Shown one piece after another: positions 17,828 through 52,203 of a stretch of DNA of 64,000 nt; position 1 is the stretch's first letter, and each line of letters starts with the position of its first letter. The notes under the pieces are model-generated. The model was not told the origin of the DNA. It did no database searches and saw only the letters and a list, made by a program, of their open reading frames with translations. The DNA lies in contig VRVR01000019.1 of NCBI GenBank assembly GCA_009859145.1, forward strand, positions 197,695 through 261,694, in the 5' to 3' direction. The translations under genes were made by a program, and so were the position numbers. Source of the stretch: Andalucia godoyi And28. Lineage: Eukaryota > Protista > Jakobida.

Positions 17828-17942
17828 GATAATAGCCCTAGTGCAATCGCCCTGAATATTTCCAATCCAAATTCTTTTCTAATTGAAGAAGAAAAAAAGG
17901 ACTTTGTTAAATAACAAGAATGTGAAACGAATATATCGGATA

Positions 17943-18735
17943 GGGCACACCCATTCAAATCAATGCAGGGATTCCCAGGAACGAGAGGCGTGAAATGCCC
18001 GGCAGAACCAGACATTTTCAATCTTCATGAGTGCCTCACGCGAGGACTCCAGCTCGCTTGCACTGGGAATACCGCGTGGATTCCGACACAAGAACCGCGG
18101 TCAGATGGACAGTTCTCTGTGGCGCAGTGTCTCAACCCCCCGGGGCACGAAGCGCTCACGACGCAACACCAGTTTCTCGCGCATCCGCATGCGCACCCTC
18201 TTCGGGTGTTGGTGGAACCGAAAAAAGGGTGCCACCTGGTCGCGGGTAGCCAGACGGTCCAGCAGCTTGACCGTCGCCTGCTGCTTCTTGACACGACTGC
18301 GGAATCGGCGGCTGTTATGTCACGAGTGCGCCGCGCCACGTGATGAACGGCAAATCGTTCATCCAGATCGGGATGGCGCAGCCGCTCTCGGAGTGCAGCT
18401 TTCACCACCTGCACCATTGGGTTCTGAAAATGTGCAAGTATGAAACCGACAACGTGTGGCGAAGTGTGAGGAGGATGTGGTGCCAAATAAAAACGGTGAA
18501 ACATCAAAATACGAACGCAGCAGTGTTTTATGCAATATTTTATTTGACACAACGAAGTCCAAGGTGAAACGGGAGAAAGGAAAAAGGAAAAAGGGAATGG
18601 GTTCAACAAACAAAATCCAAGGGACGAGAGACAGCGGATAACAGACAAAAGGGAAAAGGAAACGAGAGAGAAACGGAAAGGGGAGCGGCTTAGGAATTGC
18701 TGGAATTTCTGAATTGAATTTTGGGGAAGCGCCCT
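17943..18735 (-). mobile_element. Family A copy 1: non-autonomous Fanzor1-like element, internally deleted
   Basis: Inverted near-duplicate of 47269-48249. Flanked by TA at 17941-42 and 18736-37, with imperfect terminal inverted repeats. Carries fragments MVQVVKAALRERLRHPDL (ATG 18417), RRFRSRVKKQQATVKLLDRL and GLRHCATENCPSDR. Confidence 0.75.
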
Positions 18736-19344
18736 TACTATTTATTATTATTATTATTATTATTTGGCGAAGGCAGCAAGCATAGCTTCTGGTGCACGAA
18801 ATTGATCGCATTATTTTCAGGCTACGATCTTTTAAAGGTATATCATGATGTATTACCTGTGTTTATTTTGTAGAAGACTCATTTGTTCTATTGCCACTTC
18901 TGTTTTCCTTTTTTTTGTCCGAGTTGCAACATTGATGATGCATCGTCAGCGAAAGGCTCTGGAGAGCTCGCAAGCCTATATTTTTTTTACCGGAGTTCTC
19001 GCTCCACCTCGCAAAGACGACATCAGGGCACAGGACTGACATAGCAACAGAAAATGATGCAGAGCTGCAAGTGCATGTGACTTCAACAGGGAAAAACTCG
19101 TCAATGTTTCCTCGTCGTAAACAGCAGTCTCGCAAAACGGAATGATGTCTGCAAACCTTGGCTGCACAAACTCGGACACAGTGTAGTGTGCGATCCTTTC
19201 CGATGGGATCGGGGGATGGCAGCGCAGGTCTTCTAATCCGCGCACGTTGATATCAGCGTGTCCAGCACGGCGCACGTATCGCTTGAGGAATATGAAATTG
19301 GGATAGACCAGCGCCCAGAATACCAGTATTTGCGCGCTTTTTTC

Positions 19345-20250
19345 TCAGCATCTTTGCAAAGGCGTCGCATCGCCAACATTGTCGTCATCGTCATCGAGAA
19401 GTGCTTGCCTATTTCGCTTTCTATTGAGTGCATTCTCTACCGAAGACGACGTGTTCTCTTCCACAACCCGTCTTCTTTTGGCTGCCGTAGCATCAGAATC
19501 ATCTTGCGCCTCCGTCGACTGTTGCGAGCTGTTAAAGCCAGCAGGAGCACCAAGCCTGCATGAAAAATGCTTGACACTGTCCGCTGGTCGACCTTTAAAT
19601 GACGGCGACAGCGTGACGTCCCTGTTTGCCGGTCGAGGTGCCGGAGAAGCAGTTGGAGACCCCTTATCCTCCGGGACGTACTGTGTTTTTGGTTTCTTGG
19701 ACGGATTTCCAAGCCTTTGCATCGGCCGAATTGGAGCCAATGATCCGTGAATTGAAGCTTCGATCTTCTTTTGCTGCTCCACAAACCGAGTCCATTCCTC
19801 TTCAGTCATGTCATCCTGAACAGGTGCAATATCCTCGTACACATCCTCATCCTCGTCCTCGTCCTCGTCCTCATCATCATCATCACCACCACCATTCATC
19901 CTCCCACCTTCTTCCGTCGACGCACCCTCGTCTTCACAAGATTCATACTCTCTGAGTGCGGCGTCCCCGCGACTGCCGTGTTTTCCATCCTTCTCTGGAC
20001 CTCGATTCCCTCGGTGTCTCTGCTCGTGAGCAATGCTTTTGTGCATCGACAGCTTGAGCCCTGCAATGCGATCCGGGTCGTTTTCTGTTCCCCGCACATC
20101 TTCCATAAGATTACCAGACATGTACCGGTCAATGGTGTTCTCAAGAGACCCAAACGTCAGCAGATGCGCTTTGAGCCACGGTATCGCCCCAGGAATAAAG
20201 TTCGGGAACATCGCTACAAACAACTGCATCTGCTCATCAATTTGGCTCAT
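19345..20250 (-). CDS. CUE-like ubiquitin-binding domain protein; the frame continues 123 codons past a single TGA to 18976
   Basis: N-terminal QLFVAMFPNF...SLENTIDRYM helical motif, then acidic and disordered sequence. TGA at 19347-19345 is followed by an open frame ending at TAG 18976. Confidence 0.6.
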   Translation of the reverse strand: MSQIDEQMQLFVAMFPNFIPGAIPWLKAHLLTFGSLENTIDRYMSGNLMEDVRGTENDPDRIAGLKLSMHKSIAHEQRHRGNRGPEKDGKHGSRGDAALREYESCEDEGASTEEGGRMNGGGDDDDEDEDEDEDEDVYEDIAPVQDDMTEEEWTRFVEQQKKIEASIHGSLAPIRPMQRLGNPSKKPKTQYVPEDKGSPTASPAPRPANRDVTLSPSFKGRPADSVKHFSCRLGAPAGFNSSQQSTEAQDDSDATAAKRRRVVEENTSSSVENALNRKRNRQALLDDDDDNVGDATPLQRC

Positions 20251-20625: not shown

Positions 20626-20829
20626 ATTAACATCCCTGCAAAGAATCCGGAGGGGCCGTTGTAGGTCTCACGCCCCATCTTTCGCGGGCGCCCTACGCGA
20701 GAGTCCAACTCGCTTGCGCCAGGAATACCTGACAAGGTGTGGTATGGCGACGTAGTGCCAAATAAAACTGTTAAATATCAAAATATGAACAGCAGTGTTT
20801 TAATTAATGTTTTCTTCTGACACAACGAA
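20626..20829 (-). mobile_element. Family A copy 3: diverged ORF-less mini (ghost) element
   Basis: 20731-20829 aligns to the 5' subterminal region of A1/A2 (gtgccaaataaaa..tcaaaata.gaac..agcagtgtttta...tgacacaacgaa). 20687-20729 and 20626-20648 align to the A 3' region (ggtattcc..cgcaagcgag.tgga..ctcgcgt; gga.tc..tgca..gat.t.aat). Confidence 0.7.
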
Positions 20830-20831
20830 CG

Positions 20832-21375
20832 CCTACATTATCCACTGAACATGCATATCAACGAGTAGACATGCATATTCAATCTTGCATCCCGTTGCTC
20901 GGAAGGGGAAAGGCCCCAACACGCCTCACGGTGTTCTTCAGATAGATGTTCCGCGCTCCGTTCTCAATCTCGATCAATCTGCGAGCCACTTTTCTCAGCG
21001 TGACACGTTGTTCCTGAGAAAGGTGCATTTTGATTCCGACGGCCCTAGCAGCAGGCGCTTTCGTGTCCTCAGTTGCAGCGCGGTTGATGCACCTGGAGAT
21101 ACGAGAAGAAGAGGCGGTAGGAAGACGGTGGGGGTTTGCGGCTGCGACACTTCTCGCTTCACGTGCTGCTTTCCCAACGCTGCATGGGCTCCCGCATTGT
21201 TCGACGCAGAGTGCCTGAACATGTGCTGCACACGTGGTCATCGTTTCTCAGTTCGTATATCCATCCCCGATGCGGACCGTCGGTTCTTGTCCCAATTGCA
21301 GACATTCGAGAAACCGTTCAGCGCCCTGGATTTGGGCGCCAACACCCAAAAAGAAGAAGAAGTCGGGAGCCCACC
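20832..21375 (-). mobile_element. Family B copy 1: non-autonomous Fanzor2/IS607-TnpB-like element
   Basis: 20830-21148 is an inverted duplicate of 51905-52203. Encodes RAVGIKMHLSQEQRVTLRK (OrfB_IS605 HTH/WED start) joined to IDRD/ENGARNIYLKN (RuvC-III). GG occurs at both proposed junctions on the minus strand. Confidence 0.75.
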
Positions 21376-21571
21376 AAGTGAGTTTTACAGAAAGGGGGGG
21401 GGGGGGCATGGGTCTGTGAGACACGACATACCGAACCAGTATGCAAAGTAAAAGGCGAGGATGACAGAAACAATCCAAGGATCCATGATAAAATAAAAGC
21501 ACATAGAAGAAGAAGCCAAGGGGAGGATCACGACATTAACAACAACAGCAACAGTGGCAGGGGCAGCGACT

Positions 21572-22786
21572 CTATCCTTCTGGCTCCTCTGTTTCGAAAT
21601 GAGGATGCTGATGGAGATGCGTTCGAACATCATCTGGAACGGCAGCTCCTGATGCGTCCTTTTCGTGAATCACCTGCAACATTCTCTTACCGCTCATCTG
21701 AGTGGTGAGTTCCCTCCCAAACACAGAAGCATGAACCACGGCCACGGACCGATCGACATTTGTGTTGTCCACGAGTCCCCAAGGCCGAGTGCAGTTCTTG
21801 GACCGCAGGCACAGTTCGGTTTGAATTCTTCGAATTGCATCAATGTGTGCAACATACCTGTTCATTCTCGGTTCCAGAGTCATGTATTTTGCTCTCGTCG
21901 CAAATCTTTCTCGATGCTTCTCTGCATTGGATATGTGAACCACAAACGGCACGACAAAATCAGCCTCCATTTCAGCGGGGATCATCTCCTGAAGGACATT
22001 CGGCAGCAAGTGCACTCCTTCTACAATGATTGGTGTCCGTCGCTTGACGTGGCTCTGAATAAGTGGCACAAGAGCCTGGAGCACCATTCTGCACTGGTCC
22101 TCATAATCCTGGACATTCGACTCATATGTCGATGCAAACAGATGCTGCGGTGCATTTGGAATCGAGCGCAATGCGTGACGAATCACATCGGTTGAGATAA
22201 TCGTCGTGATTCCAATTCGAGCAGCCAACAACGCAGCCAGCGTCGACTTTCCACACCCGGACGTCCCACCAAGTAGAATCACGATGGGACGTCTCCGAGC
22301 TTGAATTTCCACTGCCAGCTCTATGTCTCTCATGGGATAAAACAAGCTGTGAGCAGAGAGTGTTGCGGCAATCAATCTGCATAGCAGGGCTGCCCTTTCC
22401 CGACTCCTATTCTCCCGCTCTTCTCCACTCTCGGCACCGCCGTCGACATCCCCCTTTGAGGAAGACTCTCTTCGGTGGCGATGGTGGTGGTGGTCATTAT
22501 GATGATTCTGATCGGTGCCGTTTGCACTGATGCTTGCATAGGAGGAACCAGCGGAGTTGGAGTACGACGCCGTACAGTGGAACGAGTCATGGTCTTGCGA
22601 GTCGTAATCTTCAGGAACAACATCCACAGGAAATGCATCCACCATCGTCTCTGCTCGGTGAGGCTTCACACCAATCAATGCAAATATCTGGCGAATTGCA
22701 AACGGATGAACACCCATTCTTCTCCCTTCTTTTCTTCTCTTTTCGCTCAGCAAACGTAAGTCGCTGCTGAACACTAGCCCGAGCAC
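21572..22786 (-). CDS. 2-phosphoglycerate-kinase-like P-loop NTPase (LPA1 homolog)
   Basis: ILLGGTSGCGKSTLAALLAARIGITTIISTDVIRHALR, IIVEGVHL, HRERFATRAKYMTLEP and VDNTNVDRSVA. Confidence 0.85.
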   Translation of the reverse strand: MLGLVFSSDLRLLSEKRRKEGRRMGVHPFAIRQIFALIGVKPHRAETMVDAFPVDVVPEDYDSQDHDSFHCTASYSNSAGSSYASISANGTDQNHHNDHHHHRHRRESSSKGDVDGGAESGEERENRSRERAALLCRLIAATLSAHSLFYPMRDIELAVEIQARRRPIVILLGGTSGCGKSTLAALLAARIGITTIISTDVIRHALRSIPNAPQHLFASTYESNVQDYEDQCRMVLQALVPLIQSHVKRRTPIIVEGVHLLPNVLQEMIPAEMEADFVVPFVVHISNAEKHRERFATRAKYMTLEPRMNRYVAHIDAIRRIQTELCLRSKNCTRPWGLVDNTNVDRSVAVVHASVFGRELTTQMSGKRMLQVIHEKDASGAAVPDDVRTHLHQHPHFETEEPEG

Positions 22787-47053: not shown

Positions 47054-47268
47054 GAAGCAGTCTTTCTGAAGAAGCAAAAAGAAAAGAAAGAAAGAGAGAC
47101 AGAGACAGAGAGACAGAGAAACACAAGTCAAGCAAGTAAAGATAAAGGATGAATGCTTAAATGGATAAGAATGGTGATTAAAACAAGCATTTGAGGCTAT
47201 TTGGGCTCTGCGAAGAGGCCTGACAAAGTGACGGGTTCGCGCTCGCCTTTTGGGAGTGTTTTACCGTA

Positions 47269-48249
47269 CGAGCGTTTCCATAAAATTCAATTCAGAAATT
47301 CCAGCAATTCCTAAGCCGCTCCCGTTTCCGTTTCTCTCTTTTCCTTTTCTCTTTTCCCTTTTCCCTTTTTCCCTTTCTCCCGTTTCACCTTGGACTTCGT
47401 TGTGTCAAACAAAATATTGAATAAAACACTGCTGCGTTCGTATTTTTGATGTTTCACCGTTTTTATATGGCACCACATCCTCCTCACACTTCGCCACACG
47501 TTGTCGGTTTGTCTGTTCCGTCGGTTTCATACTTGCACATTTGCGGAGCCCGATGGTGCAGGTGGTGAAAGCTGCGCTCCGAGAGCGGCTGCGCCATCCC
47601 GATCTGCACGATACCCTCCTGAGTTGGGTGAACGATTTGTCGTTCATCACGTGGCGCGGCGCACTCCTGCTAAACCACTACCTCGCCCTTGTGTTGGAGA
47701 ATGACCTGCCCTTTCCCGATTTCAAGGATTCGTTCTGTTGTAGCTGTCGCAGTGTTGTCGATAAAAATGTCGACAACGACACGGACTTGTCCGTTTATGT
47801 GTAACCGACGGTTTGTTTCTTTTATTCTTTTGTTCGTAAAATAAATCAGATAGGTTTTATTATTTTAGGTGACATAACAGCCGCCGATTCCGCAGTCGTG
47901 TCAAGAAGCAGCAGGCGACGGTCAAGCTGCTGGACCGTCTGGCTACCCGCGACCAGGTGGCACCCTTTTTTCGGTTCCACCAACACCCGAAGAGGGTGCG
48001 CATGCGGATGCCCGAGAATCTGGTGTTGCGTCGTGAGCGCTTCGTGCCCCGGGGGGTTGAGACACTGCGCCACAGTGAACTGTCCATCTGACCGCGGCTC
48101 TTGTGTCGGAATCCACGCGGTATTCCCAGTGCAAGCGAGCTGGAGTCCTCGCGTGAGGCACTCATGAAGATTGAAAATGTCTGGTTCTGCCGGGCATTTC
48201 ACGCCTCTCGTTCCTGGGAATCCCTGCATTGATTTGAATGGGTGTGACC
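47269..48249 (+). mobile_element. Family A copy 2: non-autonomous Fanzor1-like element
   Basis: TA flanks at 47267-68 and 48250-51. Fragments: MVQVVKAALRERLRHPDLHDTLLSWVNDLSFITWRGALLLNHYLALVLENDLPFPDF (47553-), HNSRRFRSRVKKQQATVKLLDRL (47873-47941) and LRHCATVNCPSDR (48057-48095). Confidence 0.8.
48130..48249 (+). ncRNA. Putative omega-RNA scaffold of the family A element (equivalent region 17943-18065 in A1)
   Basis: Position between the last nuclease motif and the right end; hairpins GCGAG..CTCGC and TGAAAATGTCTGG-ttctg-CCGGGCATTTCA, enclosed by GAGGC/GCCTC. The boundaries are inferred. Confidence 0.5.
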
Positions 48250-48623
48250 TAAGAGAACGGCGGGAAAAACTACGACAGGTTCATTGCGGTGTCGTTTATT
48301 TAGCCCTAATGTATTCATGTATGTACATCGATATGCATATAAGAATCGATTAATCCGTTGGCAACTCTTTTCCGTTACTTTCAGTTTTTTGTTTTTCCTT
48401 TTGTTTTTCCTTTTTGTGTTTTCTGCTCGTTCGTCGTTACTGCCCCCATAGCTATTTTCCTACACTCTCACACGCATTCAGGACAGAGCACGTGGGCTTT
48501 GTTGTGGATTTTTCTGCGGTGCTGTCTTATTATAGCTATTGTTGCAGAATTTGTGTTTCCGAGCGTTTTTTTCAGCAAGAGCGACAAGAAGGATCTTTTT
48601 TGGTGGCTGTTGAGAGAATTACA

Positions 48624-50746: not shown

Positions 50747-51409
50747 TCAATGTGGTGGATTCGTGGATGTTGTTGTGGTTGAGATACGACAGATGTCTCG
50801 CTTCACGGGACGACGACAGCTTGTCGAACGGGGGATGAGGACATCAGTAATGGTGCCCGTGTCGATGGCGTCGGTGGTCTCTGTTTGCATCTCCCGGATC
50901 TCTTGTGTGGTAAATGCGTAGATGGGAGCATCTTTGCGAAGATAGAGTGGGTGCTTGGGAGTTCCGACCATGGTGTAGCCAAAGCAAAATACCTTTTGTA
51001 AGCAGCCTATCCGTTTCAGCATTTCCTCGACTTGCCTCCCACGCTCCAGGAACACCCCGTGGTTTCCCCACGCAACAAGAATTCGATGCGCCTCAACGCA
51101 GTGCGATGCAATGTACGTGTCGTTTTGGGGGCCAACGGGATCGGTAACCGTCCGTAGACCTTTTGGATTGGTGGACCGCAATGCAAAGATGTTAACAGCA
51201 ATCATTGCTCCGCATCCCCATGTGCGTGCCAAGTCAATGGAGCGCCGGATCGTGGGGTCATCTTGAGTTTCGTCCGCCGTGCTGGGGTTCAGCATGATGA
51301 ACACAGCCTGCGGTTTGCTATCATCCCAAATCCTGTAAAGCACATATCGATACTTTTTCGAATCGTCAAACACCGCCTTTGAAACTCGGATATCTTTCTG
51401 CAGCAACAT
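50747..51409 (-). CDS. DUF1643-family protein (prokaryote/phage-type)
   Basis: KYRYVLYRIWD, FIMLNPSTADETQDDPTIRR, VNIFALRSTNPKGL, DPVGPQND, LVAWGNHG and GTPKHPLY. Confidence 0.9.
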   Translation of the reverse strand: MLLQKDIRVSKAVFDDSKKYRYVLYRIWDDSKPQAVFIMLNPSTADETQDDPTIRRSIDLARTWGCGAMIAVNIFALRSTNPKGLRTVTDPVGPQNDTYIASHCVEAHRILVAWGNHGVFLERGRQVEEMLKRIGCLQKVFCFGYTMVGTPKHPLYLRKDAPIYAFTTQEIREMQTETTDAIDTGTITDVLIPRSTSCRRPVKRDICRISTTTTSTNPPH

Positions 51410-51863: not shown

Positions 51864-52203
51864 TTGCAGAACTCGTGGTTTTCTGCTGCGATGCACCAGG
51901 CGCAGTCGCAGCCGCAAACCCCCACCGTCTTCCTACCGCCTCTTCTTCTCGTATCTCCAGGTGCATCAACCGCGCTACAACTGAGGACACGAAAGCGCCT
52001 GCTGCTAGGGCCGTCAGAATCAAAATGCACCCTTCTCAGGAACAACGTGCCACGCTGAGAAAGTGGCTCACCGATTGATCGAGATTGGGAACGGAGCGCG
52101 GAACATCTATCTGAAGAACGCCGTGAGGCATGTTGGGGCCTATCCCCTTCGCGGCAACGGGATGCAAGATTGAATATGCATGTCCAGTGTATAATGTAGG
52201 CGT
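51864..52203 (+). mobile_element. Family B copy 2: non-autonomous Fanzor2/IS607-TnpB-like element (left end unresolved)
   Basis: QNSWFS (51867-84), AVRIKMHPSQEQRATLRKWL (52010-69), IDRD (52074-85) and NGARNIYLKN (52090-119), then a conserved 3' region ending aatgtaGGcg. Confidence 0.78.
52120..52202 (+). ncRNA. Putative omega-RNA scaffold of the family B element (equivalent region 20830-20932 in B1)
   Basis: Conserved in both copies after the RuvC-III motif; hairpins GGGG-ccta/tt-CCCC and ATGCA-agattgaata-TGCAT. The boundaries are inferred. Confidence 0.5.

Follow-up and report, generated by a model that had tools for sequence, protein, structure and literature searches.

The 64-kb window analyzed here, by which we mean the whole stretch of Andalucia godoyi DNA under study, is gene-dense and nearly free of introns, with a GC content of about 50%. 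This matches the published description of the A. godoyi genome as a compact one of 20 Mb in which introns are mostly absent (Gray 2020, PMC7050145). Subtelomeric scaffolds, which carry mainly transposon- and viral-like sequence, were omitted from that published assembly (Gray 2020, PMC7050145). Self-comparison of the window recovered two real repeat families, A and B, whose members are listed in Table 1 together with the other features discussed below. A spacer of 1.3 kb between two host genes, one unnamed and one encoding a P-loop kinase-like protein, contains the two relics designated A3 and B1. No second copy of 21149-21600 was recovered anywhere in the window, and neither the Rfam search (gathering and E-value thresholds) nor the tRNA scan returned a match. 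Below the Rfam cut-off, the 84-nt block common to A1, A2, and A3, read on the plus strand (20750-20832), scored 20.9 bits against the C/D-box snoRNA family snoR116 (cut-off 47 bits; E=0.39), probably by chance.

Table 1. Features of the window discussed in the text, in order of position (counted from the first base of the window).
Feature	Position	Strand	Description and basis
A1	17941-18738	minus	Internally deleted Fanzor1-type element; blastn self-comparison
Unnamed host gene	19345-20250	minus	Neighbor of the spacer
A3	about 20674-20829	minus	5'-truncated, internally deleted family A relic; blastn, tblastn, translations
A3 C-terminal/3' tail block	20674-20729	minus	Reads ..GIPGASELDSRVG..
A3 5'-UTR-like block	20749-20829	minus	81-82% identical to A1 and A2 (blastn)
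12-mer TTCGTTGTGTCA	20818-20829	minus	First bases of A3; guide/seed proposed in the sequence-only reading
B1	20829-21148	minus	Copy of a 300-320-bp repeat common to B2; 95% identity, sharp ends
B1-specific 20-nt insertion/partial duplication	20848-20867	minus	Absent from B2; B1/B2 alignment
RuvC-III-like motif with 1-nt frameshift	20936-20978	minus	IDRD at 20978-20967, extra base at 20966, ENGARNIYLK at 20965-20936
DNA counted in the sequence-only reading as the left part of B1	21149-21375	minus	Unique in the window; not common to B2
Proposed left junction (cttGG) and 21-nt 'A left flank'	21374-21395	minus	Anchored alignment tests: chance level
P-loop kinase-like host gene	21572-22786	minus	Neighbor of the spacer
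A2	47266-48251	plus	Internally deleted Fanzor1-type element; blastn self-comparison
B2	51905-52203	plus	Second B copy; followed by unrelated DNA (GAGCGTCTTC...)

The two larger copies of family A have been reduced by internal deletions, some of whose breakpoints they have in common. About 200 bp of A2 are missing from A1, which also lacks the RuvC-III segment. A2 retains an N-terminal exon-like block (47553-47771), within which a Fanzor1 profile matches at 47559-47747 with 31-42 bits, and a second block (47894-48158) that corresponds to the post-RuvC-I segment and the C-terminal end of the protein; the RuvC-I and RuvC-III segments are both missing from it. At the left end of the family, A1 and A2 are nearly identical over the first 50 nt. 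The pair is inverted, with its members 29 kb apart, and its identity is mosaic: the right 383 bp are 98.7% identical, whereas the remaining 400 bp or so on the left are about 76% identical with indels, a pattern that points less to simple copying than to recombination or gene conversion between subfamilies. Inspection revealed no clear terminal inverted repeat in either copy. By eye, a TA can be placed at either edge of both copies (47266-47270 and 48248-48251 in A2; 18738 and 17941 in A1, where TA precedes GTAAGG at one edge and follows CCC at the other), which hints at a Tc1/mariner-like carrier for the Andalucia Fanzor1-type family.

A fourth copy of family A, 95% identical over 81 nt, was recovered from a 20-kb stretch of the A. 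godoyi contig VRVR01000063.1 (L001). NCBI annotates this copy (L001 10000-10780) as a 'putative mitochondrial protein' (KAF0852141.1); it is really a truncated Fanzor1-type relic in which GRDANAAMNI is still encoded. The proteins nearest to the conceptual A product are exclusively A. godoyi hypothetical proteins (ANDGO_07022, ANDGO_02339, ANDGO_05534, and ANDGO_03127), with identities of 62-91%. Family A is represented in A. godoyi by many decayed copies.

The sequence-only reading of this DNA had called family A a Fanzor1 family, and on this point the searches agree with it. Fanzor1 proteins are eukaryotic homologs of TnpB carried on eukaryotic DNA transposons, the solved example being that of Spizellomyces punctatus (SpuFz1, PDB 8gkh). 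The DPG signature in RuvC-I is specific to Fanzor proteins (Yoon 2023). Further landmarks that have been described are an RuvC-II glutamate some six residues ahead of the zinc-finger CxxC and the RuvC-III motif RD.NAA.NI (PMC13565253). Three Andalucia A-family proteins (P0002-P0004) contain LVGIDPGR(T/A)N, the RuvC-I segment with its DPG signature, as well as CATVNCPSDRRCVGRDANAAMNI; P0004 contains GRDANAAMNI, and the Andalucia homologs show the arrangement CxxxxC...GRDANAAMNI. An exhaustive search with P0004 recovered 21 relatives, including full-length proteins of 578-687 aa. A Cas12f1-like TNB domain was matched at E<=0.01 by eight of the 10 relatives scanned, six of them above the Pfam cut-off. 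The invariant residues of the family alignment are D-P-G-R, Y-G, the E of DEFRT, and R-D-x-N..N-I; its consensus VDEFRTTKxCxxCG ... SRDxNAALNI unites the RuvC-II glutamate, the zinc-finger CxxC, and the RuvC-III motif.

A profile built from 15 relatives of P0004 matched SpuFz1 with E=3e-22 over profile positions 28-551, covering almost all of its length, and ISDra2 TnpB weakly; one of the relatives, P0006, weakly matches the Parasitella Fanzor1 9cf0. The full-length relatives share with SpuFz1 the DPG RuvC-I segment, the DEFRTS..CxxC block, and RD.NAA.NI. Given this profile match and the Fanzor motifs of the relatives, family A can be classed as a decayed, internally deleted Fanzor1-type family, and its Fanzor1 identity is solid. 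As in Fanzor1 elements, the reading frame of family A stops about 20 nt short of the element end, the region in which a Fanzor guide RNA would be encoded. Unlike an intact Fanzor1, the Andalucia copies are short deletion derivatives: all annotated copies that were found encode just 131-214 aa, and the DPG RuvC-I segment, the RuvC-II/CxxC block, and the RD.NAA.NI motif are all lacking from A1, A2, and A3. The closest full-length relative found, P0006, is an intact 687-aa Fanzor1-type gene on a 4660-nt Logan contig (SRR12487036; L002 2173-4236); the Andalucia fragments match it at 43% identity, and a divergently oriented neighbor gene lies 12 nt from its start.

A3, the copy in the spacer, comprises two blocks. 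Its tail belongs with the subfamily of the fourth copy and P0004: it is 82% identical to the A tail in VRVR01000063.1 (L001 10662-10716) and is also matched by residues 201-212 of P0004 (tblastn). Its other block starts with the 12-mer that had been put forward as a guide. As that proposal held, TTCGTTGTGTCA is identical in A1 and A2; an exact-match scan places it three times in the window, at 20829-20818 (minus), 18556-18545 (minus), and 47396-47407 (plus). All three occurrences belong to the block of 81-84 nt over which A1, A2, and A3 show 81-82% identity; the homology of A3 to A1 and A2 accounts for the shared 12 bases, whatever lies upstream of A3. An element landing in any repeat will have a flank that matches that repeat. 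What had been described as the acquisition of a guide is an automatic by-product of common ancestry.

Family B is represented by two copies whose right termini coincide: both finish ...AATGTAGGCGT, with ..GTAGG(CGT) at the edge, and the flanks of B1 and B2 alike start CGT, so that the true end of B may be GGCGT instead of GG. A Dus gene has its stop codon 81 nt away from B2. About 500 bp from B2, beside a (GT)n tract, an intron-free gene (50747-51409, minus) encodes a DUF1643 protein (E=7e-45); members of the DUF1643 family are mostly bacterial. No B-like DNA was found in the 20-kb stretch of VRVR01000063.1 (L001) or in the SRR12487036 contig (L002). The insertion peculiar to B1 lies 18 nt from the B terminus and, when folded, makes a 16-bp hairpin in what would be the RNA scaffold. 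The fold of the B 3' end itself is not significant (z-score -1.55) and has no Rfam match, and two copies that are 95% identical give no covariation.

On the minus strand, B1 has an open frame of 120 codons that reads ...RLIEIENGARNIYLK... Across the reading-frame part, 13 substitutions separate B1 from B2 and fall 5/7/1 on codon positions 1/2/3, which argues that the copies have drifted without protein-level selection; by this measure, B is neutrally decayed as well as frameshifted. An uninterrupted antisense frame of 188 codons (20885-21451, plus) spans B1 and runs past both of its proposed ends; its product is rich in Arg, Cys, and Gly, has no Pfam match, and probably mirrors a coding frame that once existed on the opposite strand.

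The proposal that B is a Fanzor2/IS607 element turns on a short motif near the end of this frame. If one base is deleted, IDRD and ENGARNI join into IDRDENGARNI, which would make a good RuvC-III-like motif; the stop codon follows 28 codons later, and the repeat terminates about 50 nt beyond it. B2 has the same 1-nt frameshift. In the six-frame translation of the window, N[GA]A.N[IL] occurs in B1 and B2 only, against 0.13 expected by chance, and for IDRD, one base, and ENGARNI at the right spacing to stop and terminus, we estimate a chance probability of about 1e-4, an estimate made post hoc. Homology searches did not extend this motif into a recognizable protein. Among 5.8 billion proteins, the Andalucia proteome included, no homolog of the B product was found at E<=10; the raw B frames gave no Pfam, NCBIfam, or PDB match, and relatives were absent from viral contigs and from metagenome contigs, the latter searched by DNA and by protein. 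The hand-corrected frame scored below threshold against PF07282 (16.7 bits, cut-off 26.3 bits; E=0.0085) and not significantly against phrog_506 (E=0.02). Placed against the Fanzor1 profile, the corrected piece obtained 6.8 bits at the correct position, the best unrelated tile of the window obtaining 5.9 bits, and it had no PDB match. No serine recombinase (TnpA) reading frame was found in or beside B1 or B2.

With sub-threshold motif matches, no significant TnpB/Fanzor homology, and no TnpA at either copy, the Fanzor2/IS607 label did not hold up as an assignment, and we regard it as a possibility. The interrupted IDRD/ENGARNI motif, the 50-nt distance between stop codon and terminus, and the terminal GG fit a TnpB-like 3' end, and B1 may represent the 3' part of a further TnpB/Fanzor-like element, too decayed for proof. 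Two ways of deriving B from family A were considered and rejected. B is not the 3' part of the Fanzor family of A, for A itself carries the A tail (RDANAAMNIRQCWLSRPR..) and B is unlike the A proteins and their profile; nor is it internal sequence of a full-length A element deleted from A1 and A2, for B2 ends at the identical base and then continues into non-A DNA.

Compared with IS607-type TnpB/Fanzor2 elements (IS607EU), B resembles them in ending ..GG in both copies, in having its frameshifted RD.NGA.NI-like motif shortly before a stop about 50 nt from the terminus, and in that a guide taken from its 3' flank would follow the IS607 rule. It differs from them in having no serine recombinase at B1 or B2 and no significant TnpB/Fanzor2 homology.

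How B1 and A3 came to lie together depends on the two ends of B1. At the right, the final T of B1 and the first A-homologous base are one and the same (20829), so the junction is exact. The terminus of B, set by comparison of B1 with B2, adjoins what in A1 and A2 is an internal position, and both of these run without interruption through the corresponding site. A repeat terminus set against an internal position of another repeat is the mark usually left when one element lands in another, and nested transposon insertions also resemble this arrangement in that the flank matches the family of the host repeat. The precise right junction to this extent fits an insertion of B in A3, as the sequence-only reading had it.

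The left side yielded a different outcome. The junction had been placed at 21375, where removal of B1 was said to rebuild the left flank of A (ctttct..tcac-ttGG). B2, the only other copy, diverges from B1 at 21148, 227 bp short of that position, and the support from other B copies that had been set in advance as a test of the junction is thus lacking in the sole copy able to provide it. The 'rebuilt' 21-nt flank is equaled or beaten at 1.3-4% of the GG sites in the window, depending on scoring scheme and query length, and with 26 GG sites in 21149-21571, between 0.3 and 1 equally good matches are expected by chance; the rebuilt empty site is accordingly at chance level. Beyond B1 there is no trace of the other ~110 nt of the A left end, and the two ends proposed for B1 have no sequence in common, direct or inverted. 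An E-x7-CxxC string does occur in the intervening DNA (21260-21213); the six-frame window holds 24 such strings. We also considered 21148 as the true left end of B with an A flank beyond it, a candidate that was dropped for want of any A similarity in 21149-21375. Alternatively, B2 could be truncated at 51905, in which case the junction at 21375 could still be right. A tract of 13 G (read as C on the minus strand; 21394-21406) directly adjoins that junction and could be a point of rearrangement or an assembly-prone homopolymer. A nested insertion of B into A is plausible, and is not demonstrable.

Since the right terminus of B abuts an A-internal position, the most likely history is one in which B landed in a copy of A. 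We consider it reasonably probable that the spacer holds ordinary debris of two unrelated mobile elements, the Fanzor1-type relic A3 and the second repeat B1, possibly nested by insertion, with the 12-nt identity as a passive consequence. The order of events would have been the arrival of a B element in the A copy that is now A3, the later loss or scrambling of the left side by deletion, and neutral drift of both relics. Counting against this account is the failure to find the missing 130-nt left end of A3 beyond B1: a later deletion may have removed the left part of A3, and perhaps that of B1, or else some other process joined the two relics.

The second of these options can be put more sharply, namely that there was neither an insertion nor an OMEGA element, B being a 300-bp repeat (a duplicated segment or an unclassified fragment) to which a truncated A was joined by deletion or end-joining. 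B has no significant similarity to anything searched and is known from two copies only; inspection of the flanks revealed neither a target-site duplication nor terminal repeats, the proposed ends share no sequence, A3 is without its left end, and the motif evidence for B is post hoc and sub-threshold, all of which agrees with such a joining. Two observations are harder to accommodate. A3 breaks off at exactly the base where the B2 homology ends, as expected of a true terminus and unlikely for a random rearrangement, and the IDRD/ENGARNI arrangement, given the post hoc estimate above, would have to be fortuitous. We therefore hold a simple joining of this kind to be possible, on balance unlikely.

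The B1/A3 junction could also be explained by taking it as the true left end of an A core, with the left 130 nt of A1 and A2 as a separate unit and A3 inserted beside the end of B1. The A core does have two different left neighbors, B1 in A3 and a CT-rich stretch of 130 nt in A1 and A2. Owing to their common deletion breakpoints, A1 and A2 amount to a single observation; they nevertheless lie at different loci, where their homology crosses the junction smoothly and stops only 130 nt further left, at flanks that are unrelated. Homology extending past the junction at two loci indicates that the 130 nt moved together with the rest of A, and this explanation is improbable.

Against the favored history of insertion followed by decay stands the far larger claim that the arrangement is functional, which depends on whether a guide taken from the flank of B1 could recognize A1 and A2. 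In the literature, GG is the crossover site of IS607 recombinases, the TAM associated with IS607 elements is TGGG or GGG, and the RNA scaffold ends with ..GG and a fixed flanking base, after which the guide begins; native Fanzor guides are 14-15 nt long, and TAMs are 3-nt and G-rich for Fanzor2 and AT-rich for Fanzor1. The premises that GG is the IS607 crossover core and that the guide lies 3' of the right end agree with these reports. The mismatch arithmetic of the sequence-only reading was likewise correct. With the boundary placed after GG, the site in A reads TTGG followed by ACTTCGTTG; the CTTGG context of A1 and A2 would suit a G-rich TAM, and the guide mismatches at positions 1, 2, and 15. 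A boundary after GGC leaves mismatches at positions 1 and 14. A boundary after GGCG gives a clean seed of 12 nt in the context TGGAC, with GGAC at the TAM position. No boundary joins a suitable G-rich TAM to a clean seed, so the combination of TAM and seed by which a B guide would target A1 and A2 is lacking.

In its full form, the claim makes B1 a complete small IS607-type Fanzor2 element (20832-21375), inserted at GG in A3 and equipped with an A-family guide, through which a Fanzor2 supplied in trans would bind or cut copies of A. Several facts speak for it: the B terminus adjoins an A-internal position, both copies of B terminate in GG and the proposed left junction has it too, GG crossover and flank-derived guides are established in the literature, the 12-nt identity to A1 and A2 is real, and 28 codons separate a frameshifted RD.NGA.NI-like motif from the stop. 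Other facts count against it. The left junction is at chance level and unsupported by B2, and the ends it implies share no sequence; TnpA and significant TnpB/Fanzor homology are both missing; B is frameshifted and drifting neutrally, its would-be scaffold in B1 contains a 20-nt insertion, and no annotated Andalucia protein resembles the translated B1 frame. As for the target, the seed is mismatched with a GG or GG+1 boundary, the GGCG boundary puts GGAC at the TAM, and A1 and A2 are uninterrupted at that site in the window. We judge this model very improbable. An RNA-guided conflict between transposon families finds no support in the present comparison, in which several observations count against it and no sign emerged of a B-derived RNA, of a B nuclease, or of A1 and A2 being cut or bound. 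Its strongest version, in which B elements are live or recently live OMEGA transposons that settle in A, guide a trans-acting nuclease to A paralogs, and so spread by homology-directed copying or disable a rival family, is very improbable too.

The claim also differs from the restorative homing of TnpB, in which a flank-derived guide directs cutting of the empty donor site of its own element; here the targets would be paralogous copies of another family. Were B to be found repeatedly at one site in A, together with RNAs that read into its flank, this would be the first case in eukaryotes of RNA-guided competition or homing between transposon families. The present result is routine transposon archaeology, and what it contributes is a small record: a decayed Fanzor1-type family in the genome of a jakobid (Discoba), one relic of which lies against the end of a dead repeat.
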